Source of the DNA: Macrostomum hystrix
Lineage: Eukaryota > Animalia > Platyhelminthes
NCBI GenBank assembly: GCA_950097015.1
Contig: CATNEN010000028.1
Location: forward strand, 248,001-312,000
Length of the DNA: 64,000 nucleotides
Direction: 5' to 3'
A model generated the notes under the pieces. That model saw only the letters and a program-made list of their open reading frames with translations. It was not told the origin of the DNA and ran no database searches. Positions 4,771-27,704 of this stretch are shown here, in pieces. Within the stretch, counting starts at the first letter, position 1; every line of letters begins with the position of its first letter. A program made the position numbers and the translations under genes.

Positions 4771-4806
4771 TCAATAAAAAAGTAATGAAGAACTCACAAA
4801 ATGAAT

Positions 4807-7800
4807 TTATACTGACCTATAAGCCGGTTCTTCTGGGTTGCTCATCGACAAGGAAGCGCCATATGTTGGGATCGACGGGTACATCAGCGGGGGATGAGCT
4901 TGTACTCGAACACCAGAATAAAACGAAGTAGGCATAGAAGACGGTGGCAGAAACGAAGCCGGTTGCATCGGTGGCGTGGGCCTGCGTCGAAGCGGTAGCT
5001 TCTGATCGACGCCTCCCGGACCTCGGACAGTGACCAAAAGCTGGCTGACGTCGCAGTTGAAGTCACCGACGCTGATGCTGGAGACGCCGCGGCAGAGAGC
5101 AGCCTCGAGTTGGTCGTTGAGGCCAGGCTCGTGCAGGTTGTCCACGGGGATCCAGGCGCCGCCGCTGAGGAAGAACCAGCGCCAGTTCGTGGCCAGAGGC
5201 TGGCGGAGCACCACGCGGCTGTCAGTGCGAAGGCAGCGTAGGCTGCCAGAGGCGCCAGAGGTGGTTCGAATCTCCATGGGGCCGGGGCCGAAGAACATTG
5301 TCAGCTGGCCGGGAAACTCGGCAACGAACTCCGAGTCGCTGCCGCTCGCAGTGGTGACAAATTCGGACCGGTCAGGCTGGCAGAAGGCCTCCTCAAGCTG
5401 GATATTCAGCACTGGATCCGCGTCCTTCCATTTGTTGGACGGCCATCGGGCGGCCCGCCACTGCCACAGGTAGGGCAGCTTGTGGCGGCTGTGCCGTCTG
5501 GGGCAGCTCTGCTCGTAGCATTCGTGCCGAAGGAATTCCTCGCATAGGGTCTCCGAGGGAGCGGAGGCGGCTGCAGGTGGCGGCTTTGATAGGGCAGCGG
5601 CGGCTGCAGGTGGCCGCTTTGATGGGGCAGCGGCGGCTGCAGGTGGCGGCTTTGATGGGGCGGCAGCGGCTGCGGTTGGCAGCGGAAACAAGACCGCAGG
5701 GGCGACAATTGGCACTCGCGGTTTCGACGGGCCATCTGCCGCAGCAGTCCTTCGCTTTTGATGACCGGTCAGGCTGGCAATGTCGTCAGCGAGCATTGGC
5801 CCGGTAGGAGCCGACTGGTTCTGCTTCTGAGTTACCTTTTTCTGCTGTTTACGCGGCTTTGACTGCACCTGCATAGCTTGCGTCTCACTCTGAGCAGATC
5901 TGGACGGCGTATCAGGTCTAGAAGCAGAAATTTGCATTAGGCTCGTGACGCTCGCATTTGATAGCTTCTGTTTTGGTTCTTTATTCTTCTGTTGTTGCTT
6001 TTCAGCCTTCTTATCCTGGCTCAGCTTAGCTGCACTGGTGCCGGATGCTTGGGGAGGAGGCGACTTGGGTGCAGGGTTCGTATTCAAATTGGACAGCGGA
6101 GCAGGCAGCGAGGGCGGAGCTTTAGAACTGCCTTGCAGACTCGGGTGCCGATCCTTGACTGGGGCGGTGCAACACAGCGGAGCGGGCACTAAAAAAGCGC
6201 GGAGCACATGGCCAGGGTTCAGAGAGTCCATGTCGAATGGAAACAGTTTGTTCTTGTTGGATTCGTCAATGATCAGCGTGTGCTGCCTGTGGCAACTACA
6301 GCGGCCACAGTTCCTGTATGTGACATTGTTGCACAGGTGAATGTCTGGACATTCTGAGCGCTGGCAGCCAGAGTCTGAGTTGTAGTCTGAGCACACCTTG
6401 GGGTGACAGGCCCGCAGCAGGTCCAGAACCTCGCCCTGCCTCAGACCGTCTGCTATGCCCAGAGCGCTGCGAATGCGGTGGTTGCGGCCGGTGAGGTCGT
6501 GGCACAGCCGGCAGGAAGACTGGAGAAAGCGATTGAGAAGCGTTTGAGTCGACAGAAATGAGTTTCAAATGACATTACAACGGTGCTCGATATGGTACAC
6601 TTTTTATCGGGGTACACTTCCATTCATTCACGGGATGCTGCAGAATCTATCATTCACGGGATGCTGCAGGACACATTCATTCACGGGATGCTGCAGAATC
6701 TATCATTCACGGGATGCTGCAGGACACATTCATTCACGGGATGCTGCAGAATTTTTTCATTCACGGGATGCTGCAGAATCTATCATTCACGGGATGCTGC
6801 AGAATCTATCATTCACGGGATGCTGCAGGACACATTCATTCACAGGATGCTGCAGGACACATTCATTCACGGGATGCAGCAGGACACATTCATTCACAGG
6901 ATGCTGCAGGACACATTCATTCACAGGATGCAGCAGGACACATTCATTTACCCAACGCCATCAGCCACAGCCCTCACTCGCCTTATCGTGCACTTTTCCA
7001 TCAGGATCGGCCAGGAACCAGAGGCACAGGTGCAGCTGGCAGCAGTCGGCCTTCAGGCACGAGTTGGGGGCTCCGTTGTGCATCGGGCAGATGCGGAATC
7101 GGCGGAACACATTCACGCTGACGATGCGTCCGCTGTCCTCAGCCTTGTAGATGTCAATCATGCTCTGCACTGGCTTCAGCTGCTCGTCGATGCTGTCGCG
7201 CCAGTTTTCCAGCGGAAAGTCGGCCGGCAGCTGCAGGTCCGTCAGCAGCTCCGACGGAGTCGCCTGGCCGCAGCGGCGAATCAGCGCGGCGTAGACGGTG
7301 CGCAGCTTCAGGCCGCGGTCCGAGACGTCAGGCAGCGGCGGTGGCAGGCAGGCTTTTTTGAGTCCGCTGGCTCCGGCTGAAACTGTCGCTGCTTTGGCGG
7401 CTTTGGGACTGGGCTTAGCGGCCTCGTCAAGCTTTGGCGCCTTTGGTAAGGCAGCCGGCACCAGATAGGAGCGGAATACAAAGCTCAGCTTCTCCGCTTC
7501 CAGTCCATAGCGGGCCAGTTTTGGCACACTGTCCTGCTCAAGCCGATGCTGTCTGGGACATCGGCAAGCGGTGGTCTTCTTGTTGGCTTCCGTTGAGCTG
7601 CGCAGAGCATTATTGCACACGTGTATGTCGGGACAGTCAGGTCTGCTGCAGCCATTGTCGGCATTGTAGCTGACGCACACATTTGGATGACACTGGCGCA
7701 GCAGCTTCATGATCTCGGCCTGCTTGTAACCGATTGCAATGTCCAGAGAGTGCCGGATGCGATGATTGCGGCCAGAGAGATCATGGCACAGCTGGCAATT

Positions 7801-10708
7801 TGCCTGTGATGCCCGGGGTGTGTCAGGACAAAGCACAGGTTTGCTTAATAAGATCAGCTAGTCCCTGAACCTTTCATGTTCATCATGGCTGCAGCCAGTC
7901 CCTGATCCTTTCAGATTCTTCATGTGACCACAGCTATTTTCTGATCCTTTATGGCCACAGCTAGTCCCTGATCCTTTTAATTAAAATCGAAGGATTTCTT
8001 TCGAAATGTTCTAAAATTTTGCGCTATCCTTACTTTCTTGTGAACTTTTCCATCAGGATCGGCCAGGAACCAGAGGCACAGGTGCAGCTGGCAGCAGTCG
8101 GCCTTCTGGCACGAGTTTGGGGCTCCGTTGTGCATCGGGCAGATGCGGAATCGGCGGAACGCATTCACGCTGACGATGCGTCCGCTGTCCTCAGCCTTGT
8201 AGATGTCAATCATGCTCTGCACTGGCTTCAGCTGCTCGTCGATGCTGTCGTGCCAGTTTTCCAGCGGAAAGTCGGCCGGCAGCTGCAGGTCCGTCAGCAG
8301 CTCCGACGGAGTCGCCTGGCCGCAGCGGCGAATCAGCGCGGCATAGACAGTGCGCAGCTTCAGGCCGCGGTCCGAGACGTCAGGCAGCGGCGGCGGCAGG
8401 CGGTCTGGCTCCGGTGCGGTGGCAGCTAGAAGCTTGTCAGAGTCGCTCGGATCTACTGGTGCCAGCGGAACAGGCAACGGAGCCGGAATTGTGAGGCACT
8501 TCAAAATTGTCGCCAGGTTCACCCTGCATAGCGGAGTCAAGTGTGCGCGTTCAGAATGTTTTAAGAAGCTCTGAAGTCTCCGATGTTCTCAACATTTAAG
8601 TTACAATAGCACTATATCGTCTGACTAATATGTCAGAGGTTAGAATCTTAACCCAATGAAAATCTACTCTTTAGCAGCAGGAATTTTGTATATACTACTT
8701 GGTATGAGTAGTACATTTGCAAAAATCTTCCGAAATAACAGGCATATCACATAGCTTGAAGGTACCTGGTTAGGCCATACGTTTCCAGTTTGTCTGAGAC
8801 TTCAACAGCGTCAATTTTATGCTGAAACTGGCACTGGCAGGCACTAGCCGTGGCGGTGACACTGTTGCACACGTGCAGGCTCGGGCATACCACGGGTGAC
8901 AGTTCGCAGCCAAGCCCGGTGTTGTAGGCCAGGCAGACAGATGGATGGGCAGACTTCAGCAGCCGGACAAGTTTCTCCTCCGAAAAGGTTTGAATGCCAA
9001 GTTGGCAAAGAATCTGAAAGATTGCAACGGAATGAAAACTCGATCTGGCTTTCAGAAGTATTGAAATGGGCTTAGGACCCACAGAGGGGGTCGGTGGCAG
9101 AGCGGTTAACGCGTTTGCCTCTCGCACCACGGTCCCTAAGTTCGATTCCACAGCGAGGCCACTTTTATTTGGGGCTCAGCCGCGAAGAGAAGGCTTGGGG
9201 GCTTGTCGTGCAATTTACGCCCTTGAGGGCCAACCTCCAAGGCACACTGAAGTGTACACTGCCTGCCTCCTCGCTGGCTGCGGATCTAGTATCACTAAAT
9301 GATGTGCTATTGCCCGCAGCCCTCCTGTAATTGTTATTATAATTAATATTATTAGGACCCCACAGAACTCGGTATTAAAAACTTCACATATTAGGATGGA
9401 ATCACTAGTTTCAAGATAAAGATTATAGAAATCGAAGTAGAAACGCATTTGGACTTTAATCCGGTCGCTTGTCAGATTTCCATCCGATTTTTTTACCGAT
9501 TTCCGTACGAAATTCAGAAGCCCGGTTTTTGTCCGATTTCGACGTCGGGTGAAGCTGCGGACCAAACTCGGGCGAATCGTCCGCTTCTTTTCGACTTTCA
9601 TTCGATTTCATTCAAACTTCATTCAATTTCTCGTTCGCTTACTCGTCCGCTTCCGACCCGGGCCAAAAACGGACGGGAAATCGAATGTGAAAATTATTTT
9701 TTCGATCGGTCGTCTGGTTTCTAATCCGCCGTCTGTTTGTCCCCTCCGATTTCAAAAGAAAAGTAGTGCAGGTCGATAATTTGTGAATTGTATAAATGCC
9801 TTCGCTCTTGTTTGCCTTTGCTAGTGCCTCCAGTTTTGGCTGAAGCCACGGTTTTAAAAGCTATTTTGTACTCATTTTTAGATATTTTAATAGTTGAACC
9901 AAATCTAGCTGCGCAAGTTGCAGAATTTTGCCTTCCGATCAGTACTTTAACAGCTTGAAATCCTTAAGACTTCAGCATTTAAAGCCGTACAGTGTGTAGA
10001 CTGGTCCCGTATTTAATATGAGTAAGTAGTATTTATTAATAGGTAGTTATTATCAGAATATTACAGTAATACTCTGTGGTTATTATTAGTAGAAGTGACA
10101 CCAATAATACTTTTGGTAAGCTAGCCGAATTCAGCTTTGTGTGTTATTCAATCTTCAACCTTTAATCTACCCTCCAATTACAGGAAGGGGATTTTACAAA
10201 TCATACCATTTAGGGAATTTCCAGAGCTGTTGGGAAACTTTTAGAGGCCAGTTCCCGGGTGACTGACAAAGCACACAAAAAGCACTCTTGTGTCGCTGAC
10301 CTCCTTGTTGTGGGCGTCACTCAGGCCATGGGCCAGGCCGCAATGTCCCTTGTGAACCGACCCATTCGGGTCAGCCAGCCACCACAGGCAGACGTGCAGG
10401 CGTGGGCACTCGACATTCCGGCAGCTCTTCTTGACGCCATTGTAGAACTGGCAGATTCGAACTCGTGGATAGGCATTGAGACGGCCGCGGGACAGAATGA
10501 GCTGCTCAGCTGGCTGATCAGACAGCCACTGGTCCAGTGGGAAGCTGCTTTGCAGAGCAAAGTGGCTCAGAAAGTCGGCCACGGAGGCGCTGCCTTCAGA
10601 GGACAACAGAAATTTCAGCACATTGTCCAGGGTAAGCAGGGGCGCCTGTCGGATGTGCCGGAACACATTTTCAAAGTCCAGCGCGTCCTTGTATGGCTCT
10701 GGCTTCTC
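4807..10708 (-). CDS. ZAP/PARP12-family (ZC3HAV1-like) gene A: 3 tandem winged-helix-like + 4-zinc-finger modules, Pro/Ala linker, CCCH-WWE-WWE, no PARP domain; 5' end not found; >=1226 aa
   Basis: Exons 10708-10301, 9013-8766, 8523-8034, 7803-6982, 6519-4807 join in frame (phases 0,2,0,0). ZAP-type motifs: R.R.C..(Y/H)NG..C....C..LH.C, HP.VC..YN...GC....C..(L/I)H.C, and [28 protein letters not shown]...LEEAFCQP...W.WFF...W...RRRP. Confidence 0.88.
6620..6950. repeat. Intronic minisatellite of mixed 26/27-bp units (tcattcacgggatgctgcag-gacac/-aatc)
   Basis: Visible inside intron 6981-6520 of gene A; same family expanded at 24990-25855 in inverted orientation. Confidence 0.93.
9090..9290 (+). 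mobile_element. tRNA-derived SINE family 1; other copies ~21378-21640 (+), ~40400-40712 (-), partial ~53415-53560 (+)
   Basis: A-box-like GGTGGCAGAGCGG and B-box-like GTTCGATTCC head; body motifs gcttgggggcttgtcgtgca, gtgtacac and gcctcctcgctggctg recur, in whole or part, in the other copies. Confidence 0.75.
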
Positions 10709-11649
10709 CTGAAAAAAAACAGAAAACTATTAGCTTTTTTGTTTTTACAGGATATACTCATGTATACTCATAACACTCATACATTCATATGAAATTCAGT
10801 AAGACTTACATTGTTTTATTTTATGTCATACATGCATGGGCAATGGCCTATTTAATTATTTGCAATCAATCATTCTCAAATTTCTAATACATATAACTCT
10901 TTAATTATAGTCATTAGTTTGAAATTTAAATTTAGTACTATACTATATAAAACTATTTACACTTTAGTCATTCATTGATGTTTCCTTACTAAATAAACAT
11001 GACCTACTTTAAAAGTTATTTACAAGTAAAGATACTAGATAGCAATGTGAGACTAATGGTCAATTTAAGACATAATCCAATTTTTATTTATTTAATTTGA
11101 CTGAAAATCTGCCTTTCATATCATCTGTACCTAGTTTCAGGTACAAAAATATTGTTTTTATCTAACACAAAAATAAAACATGTATATCACAAGCAGTTTA
11201 TAAACAATGCAAGATTTATTTAGAAATGTGTCTAAAAAACTAAACAAGGTTGCACTCACTATAAGATATAGGATTACAAATAAATTGTGTACCAAACTGT
11301 GCTTTAAATTGAGTTTTAGATTAAATGTTGCTTAATTTTAAACATGCATACATGTCTTTATACCTAATAGAATATCAACCAATCCATGTAGCTTTTAATT
11401 CATACGCTACTTATTTTTATTTGTATATGGACAAAAATCAAGTTTTAGTTGTAGTAGAAGACTGGCTCAGGCAAGAAGTCAGTTTTGCCCACATTATTCT
11501 ATGTATATTAAGATAATTTTAAGTGTTTAAAAGTAGTAGTAGTTATATTCAGGAATGTTGAATTATTTTTAATTTCAATTGTATTAAATTAATTTTAATT
11601 AATAATTTAGTCAATTTCAGAATAACTTCCATTTGACAACTCAATCTCA

Positions 11650-12600
11650 AGTTGCCAACATGGCAGGACGTCCACCAGCTCTAACAACCATTGTACCACC
11701 TGGCGAACTTCGACAGCCTGTGGAATTGTGCAACTTGGACCCTACAATGTGTGAACTGGGTGCGATGAAGGCGAATCCAATGGAGACCATCAAGTGGCTG
11801 GCCAAGTATCGGCTTCTGGCAAATGAATGCCATTGTGACAGTTGTCCTGGTCATCCATCAATGCATCTTCAAATGTTGTGGGGGAGACCACTTTGTTGAT
11901 TACTGTGCATGGGCCTGTCCCCAATGCCAACTGCAGGCTTCAGTCTGCAAGGGTTCCTTCTTTGAGAGAAGCCATCTGACACCGACCCAGCTACTTGACC
12001 TGATCTACTGGTGGGCCACAGGTGCCAAGCAGGCCAAGGTGCAGCACCAATGCCACATTGCCGAGCATACCATTGTTCAAAATTTCATCAGGGACATCTG
12101 CAGTCAGTTCCTGCAGAACCACCCTGTGCAGCTTAGTGGCAATGGTGTTGACATCAAGGTGGATGAGAGCTACTTCTTCCACTGGAAGTATCATCAGGGA
12201 GCCTTTCGCCCTGGGCAGTGGGTGCTCGGGATGATCGAGCGTGGTTCCAACCGCTGCATGATGGTGGCTGTTCTGGACAGGTTGGCAACAACTCTTCTGC
12301 CAATCATTGCCCATCATGTGTTTCCTGGCAGTTGGATCATCACGGACCAGTGGCAAGCCTATAACCAACTGGCCAACCATGTGACTGTCAATCACCAGCT
12401 CAACTTCGTGGACCCCAACAATCCAATGGTCCATACCAACACCATTGAAGGCACATGGGCCCATGTCAAGGCCAGACTGTGGTCCATGCATTGAACATCA
12501 AAGTGCTATTCGAAACACACCTAGAAGAGTTTCTCTGGCACCTCCAGTGGAAGATCTTCAGTAATCTTCTATTCTGGGTGGCTCACTACTACCCGGTGTA
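11650..12600 (+). mobile_element. Merlin / IS1595 (ISXO2-like) DDE transposase pseudogene
   Basis: Cys-rich N-terminus (CHCDSC, WACPQC), KGSFFE, VDESYF, QWVLGMIER, IITDQWQAY, VNH..NFVDP, HTNTIEG.W; broken by a frameshift near 11880 and a stop at 12494. TIRs not identified. Confidence 0.88.
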
Positions 12601-13325
12601 ATTGGTGCAGCTTTGCTAGTCTCTGACTCTGACTCTGAGGTTTCTATCATGTGTCTGACTGTCTCTTGTTGTTTCCTGTTGCATTGCATTGCATTCTGTT
12701 GTCGTTTCCTATGATGCCATCTAAAACAATTTAAAATTAAAAATAATTAAACCTGCTGACTCTGCAAGATTGCCGAAAAGGCAAGCAGTCAATTCTGAAA
12801 TTGTATTTGTAAAGAATCAATTTAAATTAGGCCTAATAATATAATAGACATGGAGACACCTGGTTGATAGTGCTGTGATTGGGTTAAAAGCTAAATTGGT
12901 ATTTGGAGGCACATTATTGGTAGATACAAGGTTTTCCATTCTGGTTTTAATAATAAAACATAATATTTTTTCCATAATAGGTTGTACACAAATCACTCTA
13001 TAGTTACTACAATCTGTGTTCTAAATGTTATATCTACATAAAATCCGATTTCATTGTTAATGGACATTTAATGGGCTCATTCTGAGCCACGAATATATTG
13101 TCTATGGTTGGAAAATGCAAAGTCTTGAACCAGTGTGCCATATAATGGTCCCGAAAATGGGGCCCATTAAACTGTATAATGGGCGCCAAATAATGGGCCG
13201 CAAATCATTTATTGTTGCGAAACATTTCAAACATGTTTAAACAAGTAGAATAAGCGACAACTAAGTAGTTAATAGTCAGTGGCAGTAGGCCCTAATGGTC
13301 AATACCCATTGTGAGGTAAACATTG

Positions 13326-13867
13326 TTAGGGCCAAGTCAAATTTGATCTCAATCCTGCCACCCTTGATGACAAGAGACTTGACCCTATGGCCAGCAGTGG
13401 ACTTAATTCCGCGTCCGTCCAGATAGACATCTGCTGCTTCAAGGTGTAGACATAGTAGTGCTGAATCATTGCCACTAAGTCCTTGGGACTACCCCGCAGG
13501 TATTTCTCTCCATTCTCCTTACAAATCTCAAAGACGAAGAATTGGAGAAGCTCATTCACCTCAGACTTTGACAGCACCTCAAGTGGCTTTATCACCATGA
13601 GTCCAGGCACGTCACCTTGCGCTTGCAACTGGACGCAACTTTCCTTCCACGTTCGAAACACCTTGACAGCCCACTTCTCCTTCGCACGCGTAGCGTCAGG
13701 CAAACTCTCCGCCATCCTAGGCCTACGCTACACGTCGTCTGCACTTAACACCTCACCAACACGAGTAGTATCAAGCAACGGCAGAAACTTCACATCAGTG
13801 GCGGGTGAGGCTTCAAAAGAGTCCAAGAATGCAGAAAAGTCTAATTCTTCTTCAGTGTCGGCCATTG
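13326..13867 (-). mobile_element. Crypton-A-like (DUF3504/KCTD1-ZMYM-QRICH1-related) tyrosine-recombinase N-terminal fragment, truncated
   Basis: ATRAKEKWAVKVFRTW...SEVNELLQFFVFEICKENGEKY...LVAMIQHY matches the pattern of the core-binding region; in-frame stop upstream and no catalytic part. Confidence 0.7.
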
Positions 13868-13922
13868 TGGATGCAAATAAACTCAAAGCTAGGCCTAGCA
13901 AGACTGATCTCTCTCTCTGACT

Positions 13923-15513
13923 GACGTCTATACTTTCAGTACCAGAACCAGTACCAGAACCAGTACCAGAAAAAATTTATGTTATAACCAATAAAAAATC
14001 GACAAGCAACTAATAAAAAGAATTCTAACAGATGAAATACTTATATATCGGTCCGAAAATATCATTATTGCGAATAAAATTAATAAATATCGACGGACTT
14101 GCGCACAACACACAAAAAATCGTTTACTTTTACTTTCACAAAACGTTTTCTAATATATTTTTTTCATAGAATAAAACAAATTTGCTCATCCAACTGAGTA
14201 AACGAATACAAAAAGCGGTTTACTAAATATCGCAACTACTAAAATCACAACTCAAAACTCACCTCACCGAATGTGTTTGTATAATTTCTTCTTTTTATAA
14301 TCATCGTAAACTTCATAAAAAAAACTAAAAATATAACCTCACTTTTGCGCTTCGCAGGATTATTACTAGTACATCATATACAGCTGAGAGCAAAGATAAG
14401 GAAGGAAACATTATCTGTGAACACGGCTGTAAAATTTCAGAGCCCTGACTAGTCGCGTCTCGGAGTTATAGACCCTCGAGTCCCCCCCACTCTGATATCT
14501 CCCATTTTAAAAACTTTTCGTCACCTCACTGAATCTGGTGGTCAGACGAGGCTGAAAACTCAGATCTGGAAGGAAACATTATCTGTGAACACGGCTGTAA
14601 AATATCAGAGCCCTGACTAGTCGCGTCTCGGAGTTGTAGACCCTCGAGTCCCCCCACTCTGATATCTCCCATTTTAAAAGTACTTTTCGTCACCTCACTG
14701 AATCTGGTGGTCAGACGAGGCTGAAAACTCAGATCTGGAAGGAAACATTATCTGTGAACACGGCTGTAAAATATCAGAGCCCTGACTAGTCGCGTCTCGG
14801 AGTTGTAGACCCTCGAGTCCCCCCCACTCTGATATCTCCCATTTTAAAAGTACTTTTCGTCACGTCACTGAATCTGGTGGTCAGATGGGGCTGAAAACTT
14901 AGATCTGGAAGGAAACATTATCTGTGAACACGGCTGTGAAATTTCAGAGCCCTGCAGACTAGTCGCGTCTCGGAGTTGTAGACGCTCGAGTCCCCCCCCA
15001 CTCTGATATCTCCCATTTTAAAAGTACTTTTCGTCACCTCACTGAATCTTTGCTCTCAGCTGTATATGATGTACGAGTAATAATCCTGCGAAGCGCAAAA
15101 GTGAGGTTATATTTTTAGTTTTTTTATGAAGTTTACGATATTATAAAAATAAGAAATTATACAAACACATTCGGTGAGTTGAGTTTTGAGTTGTGATTTT
15201 AGTAGTTGCGATATTTAGTAAACCGCTTTTTGTATTCGTTTACTCAGTTGGATGAGCAAATTTGTTTTATTCTATGAAAAAAATATATTAGAAAACGTTT
15301 TGTGAAAGTAAACGATTTTTTTGTGTGTTGTGCGCAAGTCCGTCGATATTTATTAATTTTATTCGCAACAATGATATTTTCGGACCGATATATAAGTATT
15401 TCATCTGTTAGAATTCTTTTTATTAGTTGCTTGTCGATTTTTTGTTGGCTATAACATAATTTTTTTCTGGTACTGGTTCTGGTACTGGTTCTGGTACTGG
15501 AAGTATAGACGTC
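13923..15513. mobile_element. Foldback / large MITE-like element: ~470-bp TIRs (13923-14397, 15046-15513) around ~3.8 copies of a 168-170-bp unit
   Basis: Ends GACGTCTATACTTTCAGTACCAGAACCAG... and ...CTGGTTCTGGTACTGGAAGTATAGACGTC; arms are near-perfect reverse complements; internal units start at 14400, 14568, 14737, 14907. Confidence 0.9.
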
Positions 15514-16439: not shown

Positions 16440-16678
16440 CGCAGCTAATGCTCAGCGCATCTGAAGGCTGCGTACAGCTGTTCAGTCCACGGACTGGGGG
16501 ACGCCACACCCACCTTCAATTATCCCAGCTGATGCTGGTACCCATTTAACAGCTGGGTGAACTGAAGCAATGCAGAGTTAAGTGTCTTGCTAAAGGATGC
16601 AAATTGTTCCAGTGGAGTCGGGAATCAAATCCCCGACCTTCAAGTCGTGAGTCCGACACCCTAACCACTAGGCTACAA
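16440..16678 (-). mobile_element. tRNA-derived SINE family 2 with Meta/V-like central domain; possible degenerate relative at ~650-790
   Basis: Minus strand reads TAGCCTAGTGGTTAGG...GGATTTGATTCCC then CTTTAGCAAGACACTTAACTC...TCAGTTCACCCAGCTGTTAAATGGGTACC. Confidence 0.7.
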
Positions 16679-17196
16679 CCTCTGCATGTTGCATGTACAA
16701 TAGTCATAGACTCTTAAACAGCTCAACCTTTTTTTCTTTTCTTGGCCATGGCCGAGTTACAAGCACAAAGATTGTCATCTCATATGGATCTAGTATAGTT
16801 TATTCATGTAGTATTAAATAAATAATATGTAAATATGTAAATACATGTAGCACAAAGACACAAAGTCACAAAGAAAGGAGGCAGAGGGGAGAGGGAGTGA
16901 GAAAATTTTATTTTGCTTTTAAAATGAAATTTAACTTAATTCAGCTTATTTGGCTTGCCCACCAAAATGGGGAATGTGGCCTAGGCGACTGCAGCTGACC
17001 AGAAAGCTACACATAGAGAGCTTGCCAGCTCAATAAATTGCCCAGTTATGTGTGGCTCGCAGGTATGGGCCCTAGTGTTCAATGGCTGTGGTGCGACATT
17101 TGAACCTGGAATTGTAGCTAGTGGAACAGTAATTCTGCTTGCCATTTTTTTTCATAGTTAAATCCCATCACAAAATCCCCCTGTCTATATGATGCA

Positions 17197-17615
17197 TCAC
17201 TGCGTCTTTCCCATTATTTGTTCCACTGGCAATATGGAAGTAAGTCTTCTCCTGAAGACCCACAAGAAACTGCTGAGGTACTGGTACTGGTACTGCTCGA
17301 GTTCGCTCTCTTGAAGCCTTTGTGGCTCCTGGAAGTGACCCACATCAGCAGCGTACAGTTCAGCCAGGATCTGATCTATATCTGGCTCCACAGGTTGCTG
17401 CACTGCTGGTAGCTAGGCTGCAGCTGGCTCGGCACCTCTGCGGCAGGCATGGCAACGCCAGTCGAATTCATCCAAGTGCATGAGTCATTGATACTCTACC
17501 AAAGACACATTCGTTCGCATGTCCTGTGTTGCCACTGGTGGTATTGATTGCACTGAAGGGCTTGCTGGCGAGGTCGCACAAGGGCATTGCATTCAATGCA
17601 ATTATCTGCCTGCAT
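17197..17615 (-). pseudogene. Decayed PHD-finger ORF, probably the N-terminus of a DNA-transposon protein (MULE-type by inference)
   Basis: MQADNCIECNALVRPRQQALQCNQYHQWQHRTC...EYQ*LMHLDEFDWRCHACR with stops and frameshifts. Confidence 0.6.
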
Positions 17616-18240
17616 TTTCAGATTTGATTGTTTGTGCTCATGTGGTTTCATTCCGGTTGCCCTTATATACTAAATAACTAAATAGGTTGCACGTCGGAGT
17701 GATGTAAGAGTTGAAAGACAGGTGCCAACACGATGTGGGGAGGGCTGGTTCTGTTCTAACTTTGAAAACTTTTGTTTTATAGATGCCGTAGTGTCCACGA
17801 GTCACTTCGTCATCCATCCTTTGAGATATTTGAGATTGTCATCTGGATGACGAAGTTGTTAGATGACGAAGTGTCCGGGGACAATATTTTATAGTTGCAT
17901 GTATATGGACCAAAATATGTATTTAAAATAGTCATAGACTATTTGAACCCTAATTTAAATATTAAGATATAGGGTTAGCTTATAATTTGCTATAGATTAG
18001 CTTTGATTAAAACCCTTAGTCCATGTATAGATTAGTCTTGTTTGTCTAGAGTTATTGCTATTGAATTAGGTATATTTTTGCTCTATATAGTATAGCTTCT
18101 TGGTGTCATAGCTAGTTATGTATAGATAAAAATGTATCTAGAACAATTTTGTTTTGACATTCTGTAGTTAAAATGACAATTCAAATAATAATTTATCATT
18201 TTACACTGTTTAACACATGCAATTGCATATTTTACTTCAG

Positions 18241-21200
18241 TATAGAAGAAAGAAAGCATTTGTTCGAAATGCTGCCAAAGCACGATTCAGCTACTTATCC
18301 ATGGAGTTTGCAGTTGTGTACAATTTACCGCAACAGTTCGATGTGCAGCAATAAGCTGTGCCGCTGTCTTCACATCTGCCCAAACTGGTTAGCAGGATAT
18401 TGCAAAGCTCAGACAAATTGTCGTATGGCTCATTCCACACTGACTCTGCACAATATCCAGGTGTTGCAGCACTACATGCCAAAACTGTCAAAAGATTGCG
18501 AATTCAGGCGTCACAAGTGCATCCTTTCAGCCTTTGTTCGGCCCTGCACGCATAACTGGGGCGGCAAATGCCGTGTGGGTCCAGCTAAATGCCCCAATCT
18601 CCATTGCTGTCCTGCTACAGCTCGCGGCAGACCGTGTCCCCGAGCCGACCAGTGTAAACTCGGCCATCAGTTGGACAGGGCGGTGTTTAAACGGCGAAAT
18701 ATTAATATTCCGGATGGCTGGGAAGACGTGCAGGTGAATTCTAAATATTTGTGCATGGCTACTTTTGTGTACGACTTCCTTTCAAAACATTAAATTTACT
18801 CATTTTAACAGTAGGACTATCAAGCCATATTGCCGCCTGCCCACCTGAACATACCGCCCCCTATACCGAACCGCCTGAAAATTTTGTTGGCAGCGCCTGA
18901 ATGTTAATAGCGCCAAATATTTAGGCTTCATTAGTGGCAGTTTGACCTTTTTTAGCCCTTGAAGGTCCAGCAGTCCGTCTAGATAAAGGTAGGTGACCAC
19001 CAAAGATGGAGATGTAAGGAGATGCAGGCAAGTTTGGGAACAGGCTGATAAATTTTGAAGGCCTAGTGATGTGTCGTGCAGTGATGTGAAGATAATCCAG
19101 TCGAATGCTTGCAAGTTGGCGAGCTTGCTTATTTGGGCTTGAGTCGTGGTAACACGCGTTGGACTAGCTTACGGGCAAGCACTTATCGAGGGCACTGGGG
19201 AGCTGGGGCCATAGACAACTACTATTATAGAATAGGAAAACAAGACGAACAATTATAAGTACATTTACAAAGCACGTAGCTACACTACACGTCACCTAGC
19301 AAGGCCGCACTGAGGCGCAGTGCTAATTCCTTTATAGAGGTGTATACACTCAGCAACATTTAAAACGCAACACTCTAACTAGAAGAAAAATCAACTCACC
19401 CAGAAGAGTCAAAGCGCATAGTCTATGGTTCAAATCGAGCTTCAGAAACGCGTGTAGCCTCCTCTCGCAAGTAACAGGGCGTTGACTCGACGTGGCATTC
19501 CCAGAACAAGGCGTCGAAAAAAGTCCTGGGGAATTTCCTGCCACGCGTTAGCAACAGCGTTTCGCAGTTCAGCGACTGTCTGCGGCGGATTCTGCCGTTG
19601 AACACTCCGCTTGATAAAGTCCCAGACATGTTCAATTAGGTTCATATCAGGGGATCTTGAAGGCCACCGAAGATGCAGTTTGCAGTTTGCGACGCCACCA
19701 AAGTGGTTGTTAACAAAAGGGAGCAGATGCGTCTGCAGCAAACGAGCGTACTCATCGCCGTTCACGTTTGCGTCTAAGAAAACCAACTGGGTCCTGCCTC
19801 GCATTGAAATCCCTGCCCACACGTGTACGGAGGGTCCCTGCCCATCGCAGCTTTGCACGTGCTGCTGCAGAAGCTCTTGCAAAGGCTCACGCCAGACGCG
19901 AATTCGACCATCACTGCGAAAAAGACGAAACCGACTCTCGTCTGTAAAGATAACGCGCTGCCACTGTCCTTGCCGCCAGTGCGCCCGCTGCATGGCCCAC
20001 AGTTCCCTGTTAGCGACATGTGCAGGACTCAGGCGCGACCTCCTCCGCATTTTTCTTGACCGCAATCCTGCAGCGTGAATCCTGCGGCGAATCGTCTGCG
20101 CGCTGAGAACGTTGCCTCTGCGGCTTCTCTCTGCCCACATCAATCGCAGGAGTGTGGCATGCAGTGTGGGGTTTCCACGCACTATTCTCAGCAGGCGTCG
20201 ATCTGCCCTCGCTGTTGTACTGCGAAGTTGGTGAAGCACCGTACCTTTTCTCGCGTGAGCCACGCTTCCAGTGGCTCTGCTCTTCTGTAGCAGACGTAAA
20301 ACTGTTGAAGGCGACCTCCCGAAGTGGTTCGCAACTGTTCGAAGAGTACAACCTGCTTCCAACATTCCGACTGCTCGCCATCTTTCCGCGTCTGTCATCT
20401 GTTGAACCATTCTCTCAGCTGGATCACTCTATCTGAAAACAGTCCATAGTCATCGCCCTGTTACTTGCGAGAGGAAGCTACACGCGTTTCTGAAGCTCGA
20501 TTTGAACCATAGACTATGCGCTTTGACTCTTCTGGGTGAGTTGATTTTTCTTCTAGTTAGAGTGTTGCGTTTTAAATGTTGCTGAGTGTATATGAAATAC
20601 ACTAGCGCTTGTGGGAAAAATCTGACTTTAGCCAGAACCATTGAATATCTCGACGGTCTAAAGAGCTGGCGACTTGGTTTTTGTTTCAGAAGATGCGCAA
20701 CAAAAATTTGGCCGTGTTCTTGAGTTTCGTGGGCTTGCGCTTGCAGCAAAAAATCCCCTTTTGGTATTTCTACTGTTAATGTAAAAAACCGATATTAATT
20801 TATTTAAAGCTAAACAGGATAGTGAGGAACAATTAAACTGCATGTGGTGAAGAACCGGTCAAGGACCAATCAAACGACGGATTGTTTAGAACCAATCAGA
20901 AAACGGGCAGCAAAGAACCTATATAAACAACACGGCTAATATATGTATTGCCTGGAACCGCATTTCAGATTGCCTGGCGATTTATAGTTATCAGCGATCC
21001 ATACAATGCGGCCATGCTGCGCCAAGCCCACGCCTGCCATTGCCGTCGGTGCCAACCTCCGGATGCCGGCGACGCAGCTGACAGCCGGGCCGAATCTTTG
21101 GCCTCTAACACCGACGAGCGATCCAGTATCGATGACTTAGATATCGATTTGGACGATGTGGCATCTTCCAGTGGCGATTTTGTAGACGATTTCGCCGCCG

Positions 21201-24200
21201 AGAAAACGGGCGCCGACGTTGAAGGAGCTGTCGGAGGCGGTGACTCATCATTTAATGAAGACAATATGATGGTGGCTAACGACCTAAACTATCTTGACAA
21301 TATGGAATCGCCGATGAGTACAATGAGAGAGCCGCGTAACATTGTAAGTCGATTAGAAAATGCGAGGCTTGAGATGTGAGTGGCAGAGCGTTTGTGTCTG
21401 GCACCAAGTCGCCTTGAATATTAAAGGCGCAGCAGTGGAGACAATGCTTGGGGGCTTGTCGTGCAGGTTATTCCGACGAGGGTCAAATCCCCAATGCCCT
21501 GTCGGGGCAGATGTACAGACTTGTCTTAGTGGGTGCCTGAATGCAGTATCTGTGTGCGCGTGTGCTCAGGAGTCAGCGTAATGGTACAGAATTGCCTCCT
21601 CGCTGGCTGTGGGTCAACGGTCAATAAAAATGGCAAGTGCCAATAGACCTGCAATTATATATCCATATTATTCTAATAATAATTGCCATTGTATTGTAAT
21701 ATCAATTATTTATCTCCCCTAGGCTGGTCCATACGAGGAGAAGCCAGAGCCATACAAGGACGCGCTGGACTTTGAAAATGTGTTCCGGCACATCCGACAG
21801 GCGCCCCTGCTTACCCTGGACAATGTGCTGAAATTTCTGTTGTCCTCTGAAGGCAGCGCCTCCGTGGCCGACTTTCTGAGCCACTTTGCTCTGCAAAGCA
21901 GCTTCCCACTGGACCAGTGGCTGTCTGATCAGCCAGCTGAGCAGCTCATTCTGTCCCGCGGCCGTCTCAATGCCTATCCACGAGTTCGAATCTGCCAGTT
22001 CTACAATGGCGTCAAGAAGAGCTGCCGGAATGTCGAGTGCCCACGCCTGCACGTCTGCCTGTGGTGGCTGGCTGACCCGAATGGGTCGGTTCACAAGGGA
22101 CATTGCGGCCTGGCCCATGGCCTGAGTGACGCCCACAACAAGGAGGTCAGCGACACAAGAGTGCTTTTTGTGTGCTTTGTCAGTCACCCGGGAACTGGCC
22201 TCTAAAAGTTTCCTAACAGCTCTAGGAATTCCCTAAATGGTATGATTTGTAAAATCCCCTTCCTGTAGTCTTTAGGATTCGCCATCCCGAATTGTGAAAT
22301 CCCCATTCTGGAGTCTTTAGGATTCGCCATTCCGAGTTTTGAAATCCCATTCTGGAGTCTTTAGGATTCGCCATTCCGAGTTTTGAAATCCCATTCTGGA
22401 GTCTTTAGGATTCGCCATCCCGAGTTGTGAAATCCCCATTCTGGAGTCTTTAGGATTCGCCATCCCGAATTGTGAAATCCCCATTCTGGAGTCTTTAGGA
22501 TTCGCCATTCCGAGTTTTGAAATCCCATTCTGGAGTCTTTAGGATTCGCCATCCCGAGTTGTGAAATCCCCATTCTGGAGTCTTTAGGATTCGCCATCCC
22601 GAGTTGTGAAATCCCCATTCTGGAGTCTTTAGGATTCGCCATCCCGAGTTGTGAAATCCCCATTCTGGAGTCTTTAGGATTCGCCATCCTGAATTGTGAA
22701 ATCCCCATTCTGGAGTCTTTAGGATTCGCCATCCTGAATTGTAAAATCCCCATTCTGGAGTCTTTAGGATTCGCCATCCTGAATTGTAAAATCCCCATTC
22801 TGGAGTCTTTAGGATTCGCCATCCTGAATTGTAAAATCCCCATTCTGGAGTCTTTAGGATTCGCCATCCTGAATTGTAAAATCCCCATTCTGGAGTCTTT
22901 AGGATTCGCCATCCCGAGTTGTAAAATCCCCATTCTGGAGTCTTTAGGATTCGCCATCCCGAGTTGTGAAATCCCCATTCTGGAGTCTTTAGGATTCGCC
23001 ATCCCGAGTTGTGAAATCCCCATTCTGGAGTCTTTAGGATTCGCCATCCTGAATTGTGAAATCCCCATTCTGGAGTCTTTAGGATTCGCCATCCTGAATT
23101 GTAAAATCCCCATTCTGGAGTCTTTAGGATTCGCCATCCTGAATTGTAAAATCCCCATTCTGGAGTCTTTAGGATTCGCCATCCTGAATTGTAAAATCCC
23201 CATTCTGGAGTCTTTAGGATTCGCCATCCTGAATTGTAAAATCCCCATTCTGGAGTCTTTAGGATTCGCCATCCCGAGTTGTAAAATCCCCATTCTGGAG
23301 TCTTTAGGATTCGCCATCCCGAGTTGTAAAATCCCCATTCTGGAGTCTTTAGGATTCGCCATCCTGAATTGTAAAATCCCCATTCTGGAGTCTTTAGGAT
23401 TCGCCATCCCGAGTTGTAAAATCCCCATTCTGGAGTCTTTAGGATTCGCCATCCTGAATTGTGAAATCCCCATTCTGGAGTCTTTAGGATTCGCCATCCT
23501 GAGTTGTAAAATCCCCATTCTGGAGTCTTTAGGATTCGCCATTCCGAATTGTGAAATCCCCATTCTGGAGTCTTTAGGATTCGCCATCCCGAGTTGTGAA
23601 ATCCCCATTCTGGAGTCTTTAGGATTCGCCATCCCGAGTTGTGAAATCCCCATTCTGGAGTCTTTAGGATTCGCCATCCCGAGTTGTGAAATCCCCATTC
23701 TGGAGTCTTTAGGATTCGCCATCCCGAGTTGTTAAATCCCCATTCTGGAGTCTTTAGGATTCGCCATCCCGAGTTGTGAAATCCCCATTCTGGAGTCTTT
23801 AGGATTCGCCATCCCGAGTTGTGAAATCCCCATTCTGGAGTCTTTAGGATTCGCCATCCCGAGTTGTTAAATCCCCATTCTGGAGTCTTTAGGATTCGCC
23901 ATCCCGAGTTGTGAAATCCCCATTCTGGAGTCTTTAGGATTCGCCATCCCGAGTTGTGAAATCCCCATTCTGGAGTCTTTAGGATTCGCCATCCCGAGTT
24001 GTGAAATCCCCATTCTGGAGTCTTTAGGATTCGCCATCCCGAGTTGTGAAATCCCCATTCTGGAGTCTTTAGGATTCGCCATCCTTTGAATTCTTTGGGA
24101 TTCCCAATCTCGATGCTACCGCTCTCTTCAACCAATATACATCTCAAATCTTATTCTGGAAATCCGAACGATGCGACAGGTTTTGTCCCAGCTCGGTTTG

Positions 24201-27200
24201 GCTGGCAGTGATAGCGAAAAGATCTGCGGACTTCTACGCGCCAGTCATCCGACTGTCTGCTCAGACTACAATTCTGATGCCGGCTGCAGGAGGAGCAGCT
24301 GTTCGGATATTCACATCTGCAACAATGTCACGCACAGGGAGAATAAGATTTCCAAGCAGCTATGTCCTTGTCACCGCAGCCACCAGTTGGAGCCGCCAGA
24401 TAAGGATCCCGAGACCTTTGCCAAATTGGCCAGATTCGGTTTGGATAGCGACGAGAAGCTCAGCTTCGTTGTCAGATCATTTCTGATACCGGCACCGCTG
24501 ATGAATAGGCTATCGAGTATGGCCTCTGCTCAAGCCGCACCTGCAGCTGCTGCTCAGGCGCTCCCAACTCGCGCTGAACCAGTGCCGCCGCCGCTGCCTG
24601 ACGTCTCGGACCGCGGCCTGAAGCTGCGCACCGTCTATGCTGCGCTGATTCGCCGCTGCGGCCAGGCGACTCCGTCGGAGCTGCTGACGGAGCTGCAGCT
24701 GCCGGCCGACTTTCCGCTGGAAAACTGGCGCGACAGCATCGACGAGCAGCTGAAGCCAGTGCAGAGCATGATTGACATCTACAAGGCTGCGGACAGCGGA
24801 CGCATCGTCAGCGTGAATGCGTTCCGCCGATTCCGCATCTGCCCGATGCACAACGGAGCCCCAAACTCGTGCCTGAAGGCCGACTGCTGCCAGCTGCACC
24901 TGTGCCTCTGGTTCCTGGCCGATCCTGATGGAAAAGTGCACGATAAGGCGAGTGAGGGCTGTGGCTGATGGCGTTGGGTAAATGAAATGATCCTGCTGCA
25001 TCCCGTGAATGAATGTGTCCTGCAGCATCCCGTGAATGAATGTGTCCTGCAGCATCCCGTGAATGAATGTGTCCTGCAGCATCCCGTGAATGAATGTGTC
25101 CTGCAGCATCCCGTGAATGAATGTGTCCTGCAGCATCCCGTGAATGAATCTGTCCTGCAGCATCCCGTGAATGATAGATTCTGCAGCTTCCCGTGAATGA
25201 TAGATTCTGCAGCTTCCCGTGAATGATAGATTCTGCAGCATCCCGTGAATGAATGTGTCCTGCAGCTACCCGTGAATGAATGTGTCCTGCAGCATCCCGT
25301 GAATGATAGATTCTGCAGCATCCCGTGAATGAATAGATTCTGCAGCATCCCGTGAATGAATGTGTCCTGCAGCATCCCGTGAATGAATGTGTCCTGCAGC
25401 ATCCCGTGAATGATAGATTCATCTCATGGAGTCACAGCTTCCCGTGAATGATAGATTCTGCAGCTTCCCGTGAATGAATATGTCCTGCAGCTACCCGTGA
25501 ATGAATGTGTCCTGCAGCATCCCGTGAATGATAGATTCTGCAGCATCCCGTGAATGAATGTGTCCTGCAGCATCCCGTGAATGAATGTGTCCTGCTGCAT
25601 CCCGTGAATGAATTTGTCCTGCAGCATCCCGTGAATGATAGATTCTGCAGCATCCCGTGAATGATAGATTCTGCAGCATCCCGTGAATGATAGATTCTGC
25701 AGCATCCCGTGAATGAAAAAAATTCTGCAGCATCCCGTGAATGAATGTGTCCTGCAGCATCCCGTGAATGATAGATTCTGCAGCATCCCGTGAATGAATG
25801 TGTCCTGCAGCATCCCGTGAATGATAGATTCTGCAGCATCCCGTGAATGAATGGAAGTGTACCCCGATAAAAAGTGTACCATATCGAGCACCGTTGTAAT
25901 GTCATTTGAAACTCATTTCTGTCGACTGAAACGCTTCTCAATCTCTTTCTTTAGTCTTCCTGCCGGCTGTGCCACGACCTCACCGGCCGCAACCACCGCA
26001 TTCGCAGCGCTCTGGGCATAGCAGACGGCCTGAGGCAGGGCGAGGTTCTGGACCTGCTGCGGGCCTGTCACCCCAAGGTGTGCTCAGACTACAACTCAGA
26101 CTCTGGCTGCCAGCGCTCAGAATGTCCAGACATTCACCTGTGCAACAATGTCACATACAGGAACTGTGGCCGCTGTAGTTGCCACAGGCAGCACACGCTG
26201 ATCATTGACGAATCCAACAAGAACAAACTGTTTCCATTCGACATGGACTCTCTGAACCCTGGCCATGTGCTCCGCGCTTTTTTAGTGCCCGCTCCGCTGT
26301 GTTGCACCGCCCCAGTCAAGGATCGGCACCCGAGTCTGCAAGGCAGTTCTAAAGCTCCGCCCTCGCTGCCTGCTTTTGGCTCCGCCACCGGCGGTCCGCC
26401 GCCGGTACCGCCATTGATGAGAGGGCCGCAGCAGCAGCACCCAATGGGGTAGGACTGGCTTGTCCCAGTGACTTTTCTACAGTTTTGTGCCTTAATCGTA
26501 ATTCATTCGTAAGTCTTTGTTCTGTACATGCAGTCGTCCAATCGGTGAGATCCAGTCTGGTGGTCCGCCGCACCTGCGCGGTCCGCATCCGGTCTATATG
26601 AACCTGCAGAGCAACCGTCAGAAGAAGCTAGCAGCAAGCAGTGTTCCGAACATAGCTAACTTGAGACTGCCGGGCGGTTCTGTTGCTTCGAATTCAGCTA
26701 AAACATTTCAGCAGCGACATCTGAAACAGCGTCAAGCGGCAGTTGCTCCCAGCCAAGTTGCTGCCGCAGCTGCTGCAGTCCCGCCGCCACCCGCAGCCGC
26801 CGCTGCCCCATCAAAGCCGCCACCTGCAGCCGCCGCTGCCCCATCAAAGCCGCCACCTGCAGCCGCCGCTGCGCCATCAAAGCCGCCACCTGCAGCCGCC
26901 GCTGCGCCATCAAAGCCGCCACCTGCAGCCGCCGCTGCGCCATCAAAGCCGCCACCTGCAGCCGCCTCCGCTCCCTCGGAGACCCTATGCGAGGAATTCC
27001 TTCGGCACGAATGCTACGAGCAGAGCTGCCCCAGACGGCACAGCCGCCACAAGCTGCCCTACCTGTGGCAGTGGCGGGCCGCCCGATGGCCGTCCAACAA
27101 ATGGAAGGACGCGGATCCAGTGCTGAATATCCAGCTTGAGGAGGCCTTCTGCCAGCCTGACCGGTCCGAATTTGTCACCACTGCGAGCGGCAGCGACTCG

Positions 27201-27704
27201 GAGTTCGTTGCCGAGTTTCCCGGCCAGCTGACAATGTTCTTCGGCCCCGGCCCCATGGAGATTCGAACCACCTCTGGCGCCTCTGGCAGCCTACGCTGCC
27301 TTCGCACTGACAGCCGCGTGGTGCTCCGCCAGCCTCTGGCCACGAACTGGCGCTGGTTCTTCCTCAGCGGCGGCGCCTGGATCCCCGTGGACAACCTGCA
27401 CGAGCCTGGCCTCAACGACCAACTCGAGGCTGCTCTCTGCCGCGGCGTCTCCAGCATCAGCGTCGGTGACTTCAACTGCGACGTCAGCCAGCTTTTGGTC
27501 ACTGTCCGAGGTCCGGGAGGCGTCAATCAGAAGCTACCGCTTCGACGCAGGCCAACGTTTAGAACCCTGCTTACGTCTGCGCCCATGCAGCCGCCGCTGC
27601 CCAGTAGCCCGCGCCCGCTATTCCAATTTCAACCGCGCCCGAATTTTCAACAGCCACCGCCTCACGGAGGCAGCTACTTGTTCAGCCGGCCTGGGTACGC
27701 TTAG
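18241..27704 (+). CDS. ZAP/PARP12-family (ZC3HAV1-like) gene B: 3 zinc-finger RNA-binding modules, acidic linker, Pro/Ala linker, CCCH-WWE-WWE, no PARP domain; 5' end not found; >=1240 aa
   Basis: Exons 18241-18733, 20969-21343, 21723-22145, 24180-24947, 25955-26448, 26534-27704 join in frame (phases 0,0,0,0,2); same motifs as gene A; several segments are near-identical inverted copies of A. Confidence 0.88.
19347..20588 (-). mobile_element. Tc1/mariner element (1242 bp) with 135-bp TIRs and TA TSD; transposase ORF 20410-19442, internally deleted; inside an intron of gene B
   Basis: TA|CACTCAGC...GCTGAGTG|TA; HTH region, [27 protein letters not shown]; the QDNA segment with the second catalytic Asp is missing. 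Confidence 0.95.
22268..24084. repeat. Intronic minisatellite, 45-bp unit (gtctttaggattcgccatcccgagttgtgaaatccccattctgga), ~40 copies
   Basis: Directly visible; fills intron 22146-24179 of gene B. Confidence 0.95.
24990..25855. repeat. Intronic minisatellite of mixed 26/27-bp units, expanded paralog of 6620-6950
   Basis: Visible; short junction sequence (atctcatggagtcac) near 25420 separates two blocks. Confidence 0.93.

Follow-up and report, generated by a model that had tools for sequence, protein, structure and literature searches.

Work on ZAP and PARP12 has been confined almost entirely to vertebrates, in which a single RNA-binding domain recognizes viral RNA. ZAP (ZC3HAV1/PARP13) arose within vertebrates (PMC8102003), and the invertebrate genes related to ZAP and PARP12, as found in cnidarians and molluscs, typically occur as one copy per genome, with a few species lacking the poly(ADP-ribose) polymerase (PARP) domain (Goncalves-Carneiro et al. 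2021, PMC8102003); the same paper makes no mention of flatworms or of tandem RNA-binding domains. Here we describe two genes, A and B, from the flatworm Macrostomum hystrix, found in a 64,000-nucleotide stretch referred to below as the window (positions 248001 to 312000 of contig CATNEN010000028.1, hereafter C28). They are very probably a ZAP/PARP12-lineage pair, each with three four-finger units followed by CCCH-WWE-WWE and without a PARP domain. The best overall explanation, to which we give a probability of about 0.6, is that they form a conserved head-to-head pair of expressed, PARP-less genes of this lineage, with a multiplied RNA-binding domain, whose products would be multivalent RNA binders. 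The locus holds transcript-supported flatworm genes in which the RNA-binding domain is tripled and the enzyme domain gone; similar arrays lie unremarked in the databases of several phyla.

In the open reading frame (ORF) listing and a three-frame reading, the cysteine-rich open segments of the window fell into two sets, one per strand, which correspond to two intact genes arranged divergently on opposite strands. Gene A (minus strand, 10708-4807) comprises five exons with 1226 codons and a TAA stop, each exon in its own phase and with no in-frame stop; gene B (plus strand, 18269-27704) comprises six exons with 1231 codons and a TAG stop, and is likewise free of stops. A first-pass annotation made from the letters alone had put the frames at 1226 residues or more for A, which was borne out, and 1240 or more for B, which was not. 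Gene A encodes three full modules, each a winged helix followed by four CCCH fingers, and then ZnF5-WWE1-WWE2. Gene B opens with a four-finger block that has no helical part, followed by an acidic linker, two full modules, and ZnF5-WWE1-WWE2. Both proteins stop about 55 to 60 residues after the RRRP motif that ends WWE2. The same annotation had proposed three repeats of the ZAP N-terminal unit per gene, with the helical part of B's first module not visible, and a CCCH-WWE-WWE tail with the stop about 50 to 60 residues behind it, and on both points it was correct.

Searches and folds used single exons or database proteins as queries. A full HMMER scan with gene A exon 4 against 1.84 billion representative proteins returned 46 proteins at E ≤ 0.001, most with several matched stretches; one of them, KAJ7659629.1 from Mycena polygramma (5253 amino acids), has 28. 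A module profile built from Macrostomum sequences only matched the ZAP RNA-binding domains 6L1W, 3U9G, and 6UEI among solved structures, with E values of 3.7e-8 to 3.7e-7. The 6L1W match runs from profile position 22 to 215 and from ZAP residue 13 to 201, which takes in the winged helix and all four fingers, and a wider profile of 38 modules matched the ZAP RNA-binding domain at E 1e-25. In an alignment of 12 tail sequences the CCCH ligands and the PYxW, LxTxS, TxWxW, and RRP motifs are invariant, and the tail profile matched ZnF5-WWE1-WWE2 of ZAP (7SZ2/7KZH) at E 7.7e-24.

The predicted folds point the same way. An AlphaFold model of the gene A tail (window 4930-5568, minus strand; predicted local distance difference test [pLDDT] score 83) had as its top Foldseek match the central domain of ZAP, 7KZH (E 8e-8; template modelling [TM] scores 0.62/0.71; root mean square deviation [rmsd] 3.5 Å over 210 columns). 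The module that was folded is residues 548-791 of PAA76514.1 from M. lignano, 70 to 80% identical to the third module of the window (AlphaFold pLDDT 85). Five structures of the ZAP RNA-binding domain were its best and sole full-length Foldseek matches (E 8e-9 to 2e-7), and VIA-align 2 gave Z scores of 8.2 to 8.9 to ZAP over 131 to 134 residues, while the next rows, at 5.8 or less, are bare winged helices. Judged on this model the match between module and ZAP is one of true homology, with the placement of fingers 3 and 4 uncertain in a zinc-free prediction. Because both the repeat unit and the tail match ZAP by profile and by fold, we assign the pair to the ZAP/PARP12 lineage, the relationship that the first reading had named.

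Expression of gene A is supported by assembled contigs from four public runs of two studies, mapped over window positions 4790-10780. Since depth over introns is near zero, the joints carry intron signatures, and one contig bears a spliced leader, we take these contigs to be RNA derived. They contain four joints with the CT..AC signature of minus-strand introns, three of the GT..AG and one of the GC..AG type, so that all four introns of gene A are present as joints, in contigs from two studies (Table 1). Exon 1 is 71% identical to PAA76514.1 residues 284-419; the exon 3 protein is 97% identical to the second half of exon 4, a repeat that the repeat scan also listed at the DNA level; and exon 5 is open over 570 codons.

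At its 5' end, an RNA contig boundary at 10709 carries 22 unmatched letters, seen in two runs of one study. Together with the matching G at 10709 these are the exact last 23 nucleotides of the Macrostomum spliced leader, which is 35 nucleotides long and ends in ATG (PMC8629364); at the acceptor, a long T-rich tract leads into CAG. The gene A mRNA is trans-spliced to the leader, and the leader AUG is in frame with exon 1 (ATG-GAG-AAG, continuing as EKPEPYKD). Because the leader supplies an in-frame ATG and exons 1 and 2 hold no other Met, the predicted protein most likely starts M-EKPEPYKD and is 1227 residues long; use of a leader AUG as the start codon is documented in flatworms (PMC9851317). 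A further upstream coding exon was considered and rejected, the two 5' loose ends of RNA contigs being the spliced leader and the exon 2-3 junction of gene B; neither is present in the window as one continuous string, in the latter case since the junction spans an intron. At the 3' end, one contig departs from the gene at 4817, eight bases short of the stop; its 170-nucleotide loose end matches an exon whose boundary is at 3189 (donor AG/GTCAGT, acceptor TTTCAG/). This splice is an intron of the 3' untranslated region (UTR), contributes no more than five codons ahead of a stop, and brings in no hidden domain.

Gene B was modelled from splice sites and from collinearity with PAA76514.1 (1158 amino acids). 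Exon 1 is 61 to 64% identical to residues 1-166 of that protein and matched Pfam zf-CCCH_PARP12 at E 0.006, under the family cut-off. The M. lignano ortholog begins 15 residues ahead of its first finger, which argues that the helix is truly absent from the first block of gene B. A 255-nucleotide piece of an RNA contig, a loose end, contains the junction 21343/21723, which places the acidic exon directly before exon 3. Exon 4 is 66 to 67% identical to PAA76514.1 residues 418-672, with acceptor and GC donor predicted, and homology to PAA76514.1 continues across the predicted 85-nucleotide GT..AG intron at 26449-26533. The B-specific C terminus is also present in RNA contigs, as a loose end at 4975 when mapped on gene A, as is the B-specific linker (joint 5650/6100).

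An inverted-repeat scan showed that A and B share five long stretches that are 97 to 99% identical, introns included. Such arms would fit a nonfunctional copy, either a recent dead duplicate or an inverted-repeat assembly artifact, and transposons and minisatellites do fill the introns and the spacer. That explanation is close to refuted, however: the frames are open over their full length; the spliced RNA contigs contain exons, junctions, and C termini specific to each of the two copies; and the same two gene types stand head to head in M. lignano. Because exon content differs between A and B and copy-specific parts of both occur in RNA, the pair is not an assembly duplicate.

The closest database proteins to those of the window come from M. 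lignano. In that species, contig NIVC01000815.1 carries the B-type gene Mlig005624g2 (product PAA76514.1) and the A-type gene Mlig025379g2 head to head. They are orthologs of B and A, with the same arrangement, the same exon content, and 54 to 79% protein identity to the window exons, and their database entries read "hypothetical protein." For the A-type gene, at about 356.7-363.9 kb, the annotation covers no more than a C-terminal fragment of 587 residues, so its three-module form is absent from databases; unannotated upstream exons encode two and a half more of its modules. Mapping the window exons onto this locus gave an exon-1-like start and three winged-helix modules, with no N-terminal finger block.

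Shared exon-containing segments of the two M. lignano genes are 81 to 98% identical in DNA, most of them 91 to 98%, whereas between the species the shared segments are 71 to 76% identical. The first half of gene A exon 4 behaves differently: it is 67% identical to the M. lignano A-type half-module and 43% to its gene B counterpart, while the remaining A/B segments of M. hystrix are about 97% or more identical. Gene A exon 2 is likewise only 34% identical to the corresponding gene B half-module (B2a), and the finger 3-4 half-modules in general show 34 to 47% identity between modules or paralogs while the other segments are homogenized. Since orthologous gene types are nearly identical within a species over patches that include introns, the sequences indicate an ancestral inverted duplication that would have been homogenized by gene conversion, that is, concerted evolution; independent parallel duplication is the less economical alternative. 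The locus illustrates cleanly how an inverted gene pair can evolve in concert and how a spliced leader can supply the start codon of a large ORF.

The genome searched comprises 220,453,370 bp in 42 contigs. PF00644 (PARP) has 29 matches across it and none on C28, and the M. lignano ortholog PAA76514.1 is likewise without a PARP domain. A downstream PARP exon for gene A was sought and rejected, as the exon joined at 4817 holds only a stop and UTR. The absence of a PARP domain, anticipated by the first-pass annotation, was upheld at gene level; the domain is either lost or was never present in the ancestry of the pair. On the whole genome the ZnF5-WWE-WWE profile found only genes A and B, and the module profile found these two and one divergent locus on contig C1 that is not near a PARP match. 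From these profile searches it follows that M. hystrix has no canonical finger-WWE-PARP gene and that A and B are the sole members of the lineage with a WWE tail; to speak of a "family," as had been done at first, was an overstatement. The contig C1 locus (3826710-3830252, minus strand) is a third gene with several CCCH finger blocks, 30 to 40% identical to the window modules, and no WWE tail. At that level of identity it is ruled out as donor of the divergent half-modules of gene A.

Several observations weigh against the interpretation given so far. All ten exon ORFs fell below the Pfam family cut-offs: zf-CCCH_PARP12 scored 10 to 17 bits against 27, and WWE scored 20 to 21 bits against 21.1. 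Neither gene A exon 4 nor gene B exon 1 matched ZAP when searched with phmmer against solved structures, and a word-indexed protein search with the WWE region returned only two M. lignano proteins, although its length window and word filter leave the blank uninformative. Single-sequence searches were thus blank or below threshold, and profiles were therefore needed. Overall agreement of the module model with ZAP is only moderate (TM 0.38 to 0.46, rmsd 11 Å), the fit being rigid over the 131 to 134 residues of the helix and fingers 1 and 2, and the model is that of the M. lignano ortholog. Finger 2 of the module is without the second Cys of ZAP, and its zinc ligands are uncertain. As to the transcripts, no single RNA contig covers all exons of gene A, and module-skipping isoforms are possible; for gene B the junction 21343/21723 is the only one seen in RNA, five of the six exon boundaries being predicted.

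The ligand pockets belong with these points. ZAP contacts CpG through K89, Y98, K107, and Y108 in finger 2 (PMC8102003). In a hidden Markov model alignment, the corresponding positions of the Macrostomum modules are a gap, Gly, one of Arg, Gln, or Gly, and Leu. The CpG observed/expected ratio is 0.77 in the window and 0.84 to 0.89 in the exons. Because the pocket residues are not conserved, finger 2 is without the second Cys, and the ratio is no lower than this, CpG sensing, or a reading of self and nonself by CpG, is unlikely.

In WWE2 of ZAP, W585, A628, and Y633 (mouse numbering) hold the adenine of ADP-ribose, and a 16-residue loop contacts the ribose; in human ZAP the mutation W611A abolishes binding (PMC9720839). 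W585, A628, and Y633 correspond to Phe, Val, and Cys in the tail alignment, the first being the one position that is still aromatic. The Y-to-C change at a stacking position, found in both Macrostomum species, tells against the interpretation. Compared with the deuterostome relatives of the alignment, the ribose loop is short by about five residues. Going by these residues the adenine pocket is partly conserved, and the tail might bind poly(ADP-ribose) (PAR). Another explanation would make this the main function: by binding PAR that other PARPs have made, WWE2 would recruit the array of RNA-binding units to sites of PARylation, stress granules for example. In its favor, the predicted fold of the tail resembles that of ZAP ZnF5-WWE1-WWE2, the residue equivalent to the W611 through which ZAP WWE2 binds ADP-ribose and PAR (PMC9720839) is an aromatic Phe here, the RRRP end motif is invariant, and the PARP-domain matches elsewhere in the genome provide candidate sources of PAR. 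The loss of one of the two stacking aromatics, the shortened loop, and WWE scores under the Pfam cut-off count against it, and we regard a primary role in PAR reading as improbable.

For the preferred reading, that of multivalent RNA binders, we propose the following mechanism, by analogy with ZAP. Each protein would be a nonenzymatic, multivalent binder of single-stranded RNA. A short RNA motif would be held by each of its three consecutive four-finger units, so that long RNAs, or RNAs with many motifs, would be bound with avidity. The sequence specificity would be other than the CpG of ZAP. ZnF5-WWE1-WWE2 and the proline-rich tail could serve as a docking platform for partner proteins and possibly for ADP-ribose, and the pair may act as an adaptor, as ZAP-S does, passing bound RNA to factors of decay or translational repression. 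We hold this adaptor mechanism at about even odds.

What the RNA might be is a more tentative matter. An immune or antitransposon role, with surveillance of viral or transposon RNA as the leading guess by analogy, we consider possible but rather unlikely. The first-pass annotation had proposed an RNA/PAR sensor and possibly an antiviral or anti-retroelement system; both proposals are conjectural, and two particular properties of ZAP, its CpG pocket and an intact PAR pocket, find no support in the sequence. A serious rival, which we place at a similarly low level, is that A and B are housekeeping posttranscriptional regulators that bind the animal's own mRNAs in germline, neoblast, or stress ribonucleoprotein granules and have no role in defense. 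It gains from the fact that two Macrostomum species have kept both gene types in a shared arrangement, from the small number of loci (two copies and one divergent locus, with no lineage-specific expansion of the sort that many immune families show), and from the absence of the CpG pocket in a host only mildly depleted of CpG. It gains also from the barnacle relative in Amphibalanus amphitrite (LOC122386057), which joins many fingers to a LOTUS domain, a germ-granule domain that binds RNA helicases. Against it, divergent finger 3-4 half-modules amid homogenized segments would fit diversifying recognition surfaces, and the characterized members ZAP and PARP12 are interferon-induced antiviral factors (PMC8102003).

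The broadest version of the RNA-binding interpretation is more doubtful still. It holds that tandem ZAP-type arrays, often PARP-less, make up a class of multivalent RNA sensors that is widespread among invertebrates and has gone unrecognized, and of which the Macrostomum pair would be a two-gene system against viral or transposon RNA. Gene conversion would then keep the winged helix, fingers 1 and 2, and the WWE tail identical, while the diverging finger 3-4 halves would let the two paralogs recognize different sets of RNAs. Should the arrays bind RNA cooperatively, they are a natural experiment on the part that valency and finger variation play in RNA specificity and, if the idea is true, a lead into RNA-based innate defense in flatworms. 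RNA interference and transgenesis work in Macrostomum, so the idea is directly testable.

Table 1. Features of the window; positions count from its first nucleotide, and a slash within a junction or splice site marks the splice.
Feature	Position	Strand	Content
Gene A exon 1	10301-10708	-	Winged-helix part and fingers 1-2 of module 1; spliced-leader acceptor CAG 10711-10709
Gene A exon 2	8766-9013	-	Fingers 3-4 of module 1, divergent half-module; joints 10301/9013 and 8766/8523 in RNA
Gene A exon 3	8034-8523	-	Linker, winged helix, fingers 1-2 of module 2; joints in RNA contigs
Gene A exon 4	6982-7803	-	End of finger 2 and fingers 3-4 of module 2, linker, winged helix and fingers 1-2 of module 3; joints 8034/7803 and 6982/6519 (GC donor) in RNA contigs
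Gene A exon 5	4807-6519	-	End of finger 2 and fingers 3-4 of module 3, low-complexity linker, ZnF5, WWE1, WWE2, proline-rich tail, TAA 4809-4807
Gene A tail domains (exon 5)	ZnF5 ~5544-5491, WWE1 ~5478-5218, WWE2 ~5196-4975	-	
Gene A alternative 3' exon	3020-3189	-	Spliced from donor 4817; last two codons become PGGL and stop, remainder 3' UTR
Gene B exon 1	18269-18733	+	ATG and four canonical CCCH fingers, without winged-helix part; donor CAG/GTGAAT
Gene B exon 2	20969-21343	+	Acidic linker; collinear with PAA76514.1 residues 157-283
Gene B exon 3	21723-22145	+	Winged helix and fingers 1-2; 99% identical to gene A exon 1
Gene B exon 4	24180-24947	+	Fingers 3-4, linker, winged helix and fingers 1-2 of next module
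Gene B exon 5	25955-26448	+	End of finger 2, fingers 3-4, linker start
Gene B exon 6	26534-27704	+	Linker with 33-nucleotide coding repeat, ZnF5-WWE1-WWE2, tail, TAG
Coding linker repeat, gene A	5555-5685	-	33 nucleotides, fewer copies than in B
Coding linker repeat, gene B	26783-26966	+	33 nucleotides, ~5.6 copies
Tc1/mariner transposon	19343-20592	-	Insertion in gene B intron 1, separate from the gene
SINE-like element	9078-9300	+	In intron 1 of gene A; ~200 nucleotides
Transposase ORF	11823-12494	+	In spacer between the genes; 223 residues
Foldback-like structure	13923-15513		Inverted repeats around a tandem array
Minisatellite	3272-4757		30 nucleotides x 50
Minisatellite	6621-6948		27 nucleotides x 12
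Minisatellite	22247-24084		45 nucleotides x 41
Minisatellite	24981-25853		27 nucleotides x 32
Minisatellite	28475-29486		78 nucleotides x 13

The introns, flanks, and spacer of the two genes hold repeats of several kinds. The Tc1/mariner transposon has 145-nucleotide terminal inverted repeats that are 99% complementary and an uninterrupted 322-residue ORF matching HTH_Tnp_Tc3_2 and DDE_3; by its sequence it may have been recently active. The element in intron 1 of gene A has a tRNA-like start with an A-box-like TGGCAGAGCGG and a B-box-like GTTCGATTCC. RNA-contig depth over it is 490 to 1260, against 10 to 30 on exons, and many contigs continue off both of its sides. An Rfam family or tRNA gene was considered for the depth spike at 8990-9389, and neither Rfam nor ARAGORN made a call there; the element looks like a tRNA-derived short interspersed nuclear element (SINE) present in many transcripts. 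The ORF in the spacer has an ISXO2-like (IS1595) DDE transposase domain (E 2.5e-14). Between 13923 and 15513, inverted repeats of 197 and 173 nucleotides, 97 to 99% complementary, enclose a 169-nucleotide x 3.8 tandem array, which looks like a foldback element.

The minisatellites in introns and flanks yield long spurious ORFs on both strands, and the 27-nucleotide array is present in the same intron of A and B with different copy numbers. Within the coding linkers the copy number of the 33-nucleotide repeat, which encodes an 11-residue unit, also differs, and therefore so does linker length between the paralogs. Elsewhere in the window, at 43261-45316 (minus strand), 50194-51189 (minus), and 54250-55359 (plus), neighboring genes are represented by two ORFs that jointly cover an ASC/ENaC amiloride-sensitive sodium channel domain, an NHL-repeat ORF, and a DXD glycosyltransferase ORF.

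Relatives with several modules are present in databases in at least six other phyla (amphioxus, hemichordate, mollusc, nemertean, annelid, and barnacle). They are tandem arrays of the same four-finger unit, with two to three units and more in some unnamed matches; identity to the window is 20 to 30%, and all are automatic predictions with no published description or function. At least two units, together with WWE and PARP, occur in Branchiostoma (LOC109478661, named "Poly (ADP-ribose) polymerase" or uncharacterized) and in Ptychodera flava (ZC3HAV1-like, XP_070560801.1); unlike A and B, these proteins retain the PARP domain. Pomacea canaliculata has two such proteins, each with at least two units: the PARP12-like XP_025082025.1 (803 amino acids), with ZnF5-WWE and no PARP match, and PVD35532.1 (942 amino acids), with PARP and a WWE found only by the tail profile. 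Dimorphilus gyrociliatus DgyrCDS5610 has at least two units and no other domain detected. LOC141908132 of Tubulanus polymorphus combines three units with ZnF5-WWE-WWE and has no PARP match; like gene B, it opens with a helix-less four-finger block.

Literature searches found no paper on the tandem-domain architecture or on a flatworm member, none linking PARP12 or ZAP with flatworms, and none containing the M. lignano gene identifier. As far as these searches reach, the architecture exists in databases as unnamed predictions and is undescribed in the literature. The first-pass annotation had asked whether multi-module forms are already known in other invertebrates; within the reach of these searches, they are present in the databases and absent from published work.

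Among described systems, PARP12 shares the lineage and domain types but, unlike A and B, combines a single RNA-binding domain with an active mono-ADP-ribosyl transferase domain. ZAP also has one RNA-binding domain where A and B each have three four-finger units, and in the Macrostomum proteins its CpG-pocket residues are not conserved and its WWE2 pocket is partly changed. Because of the vertebrate origin of ZAP (PMC8102003), the pair is to be seen as a pre-duplication relative and not as its ortholog. In ZAP-S the PARP domain is missing through alternative processing of a PARP-encoding gene, whereas for A and B there is no PARP exon on the contig. In the order of its parts ZAP-S nevertheless agrees with both: an N-terminal RNA-binding domain, then ZnF5-WWE1-WWE2, in a product without PARP.

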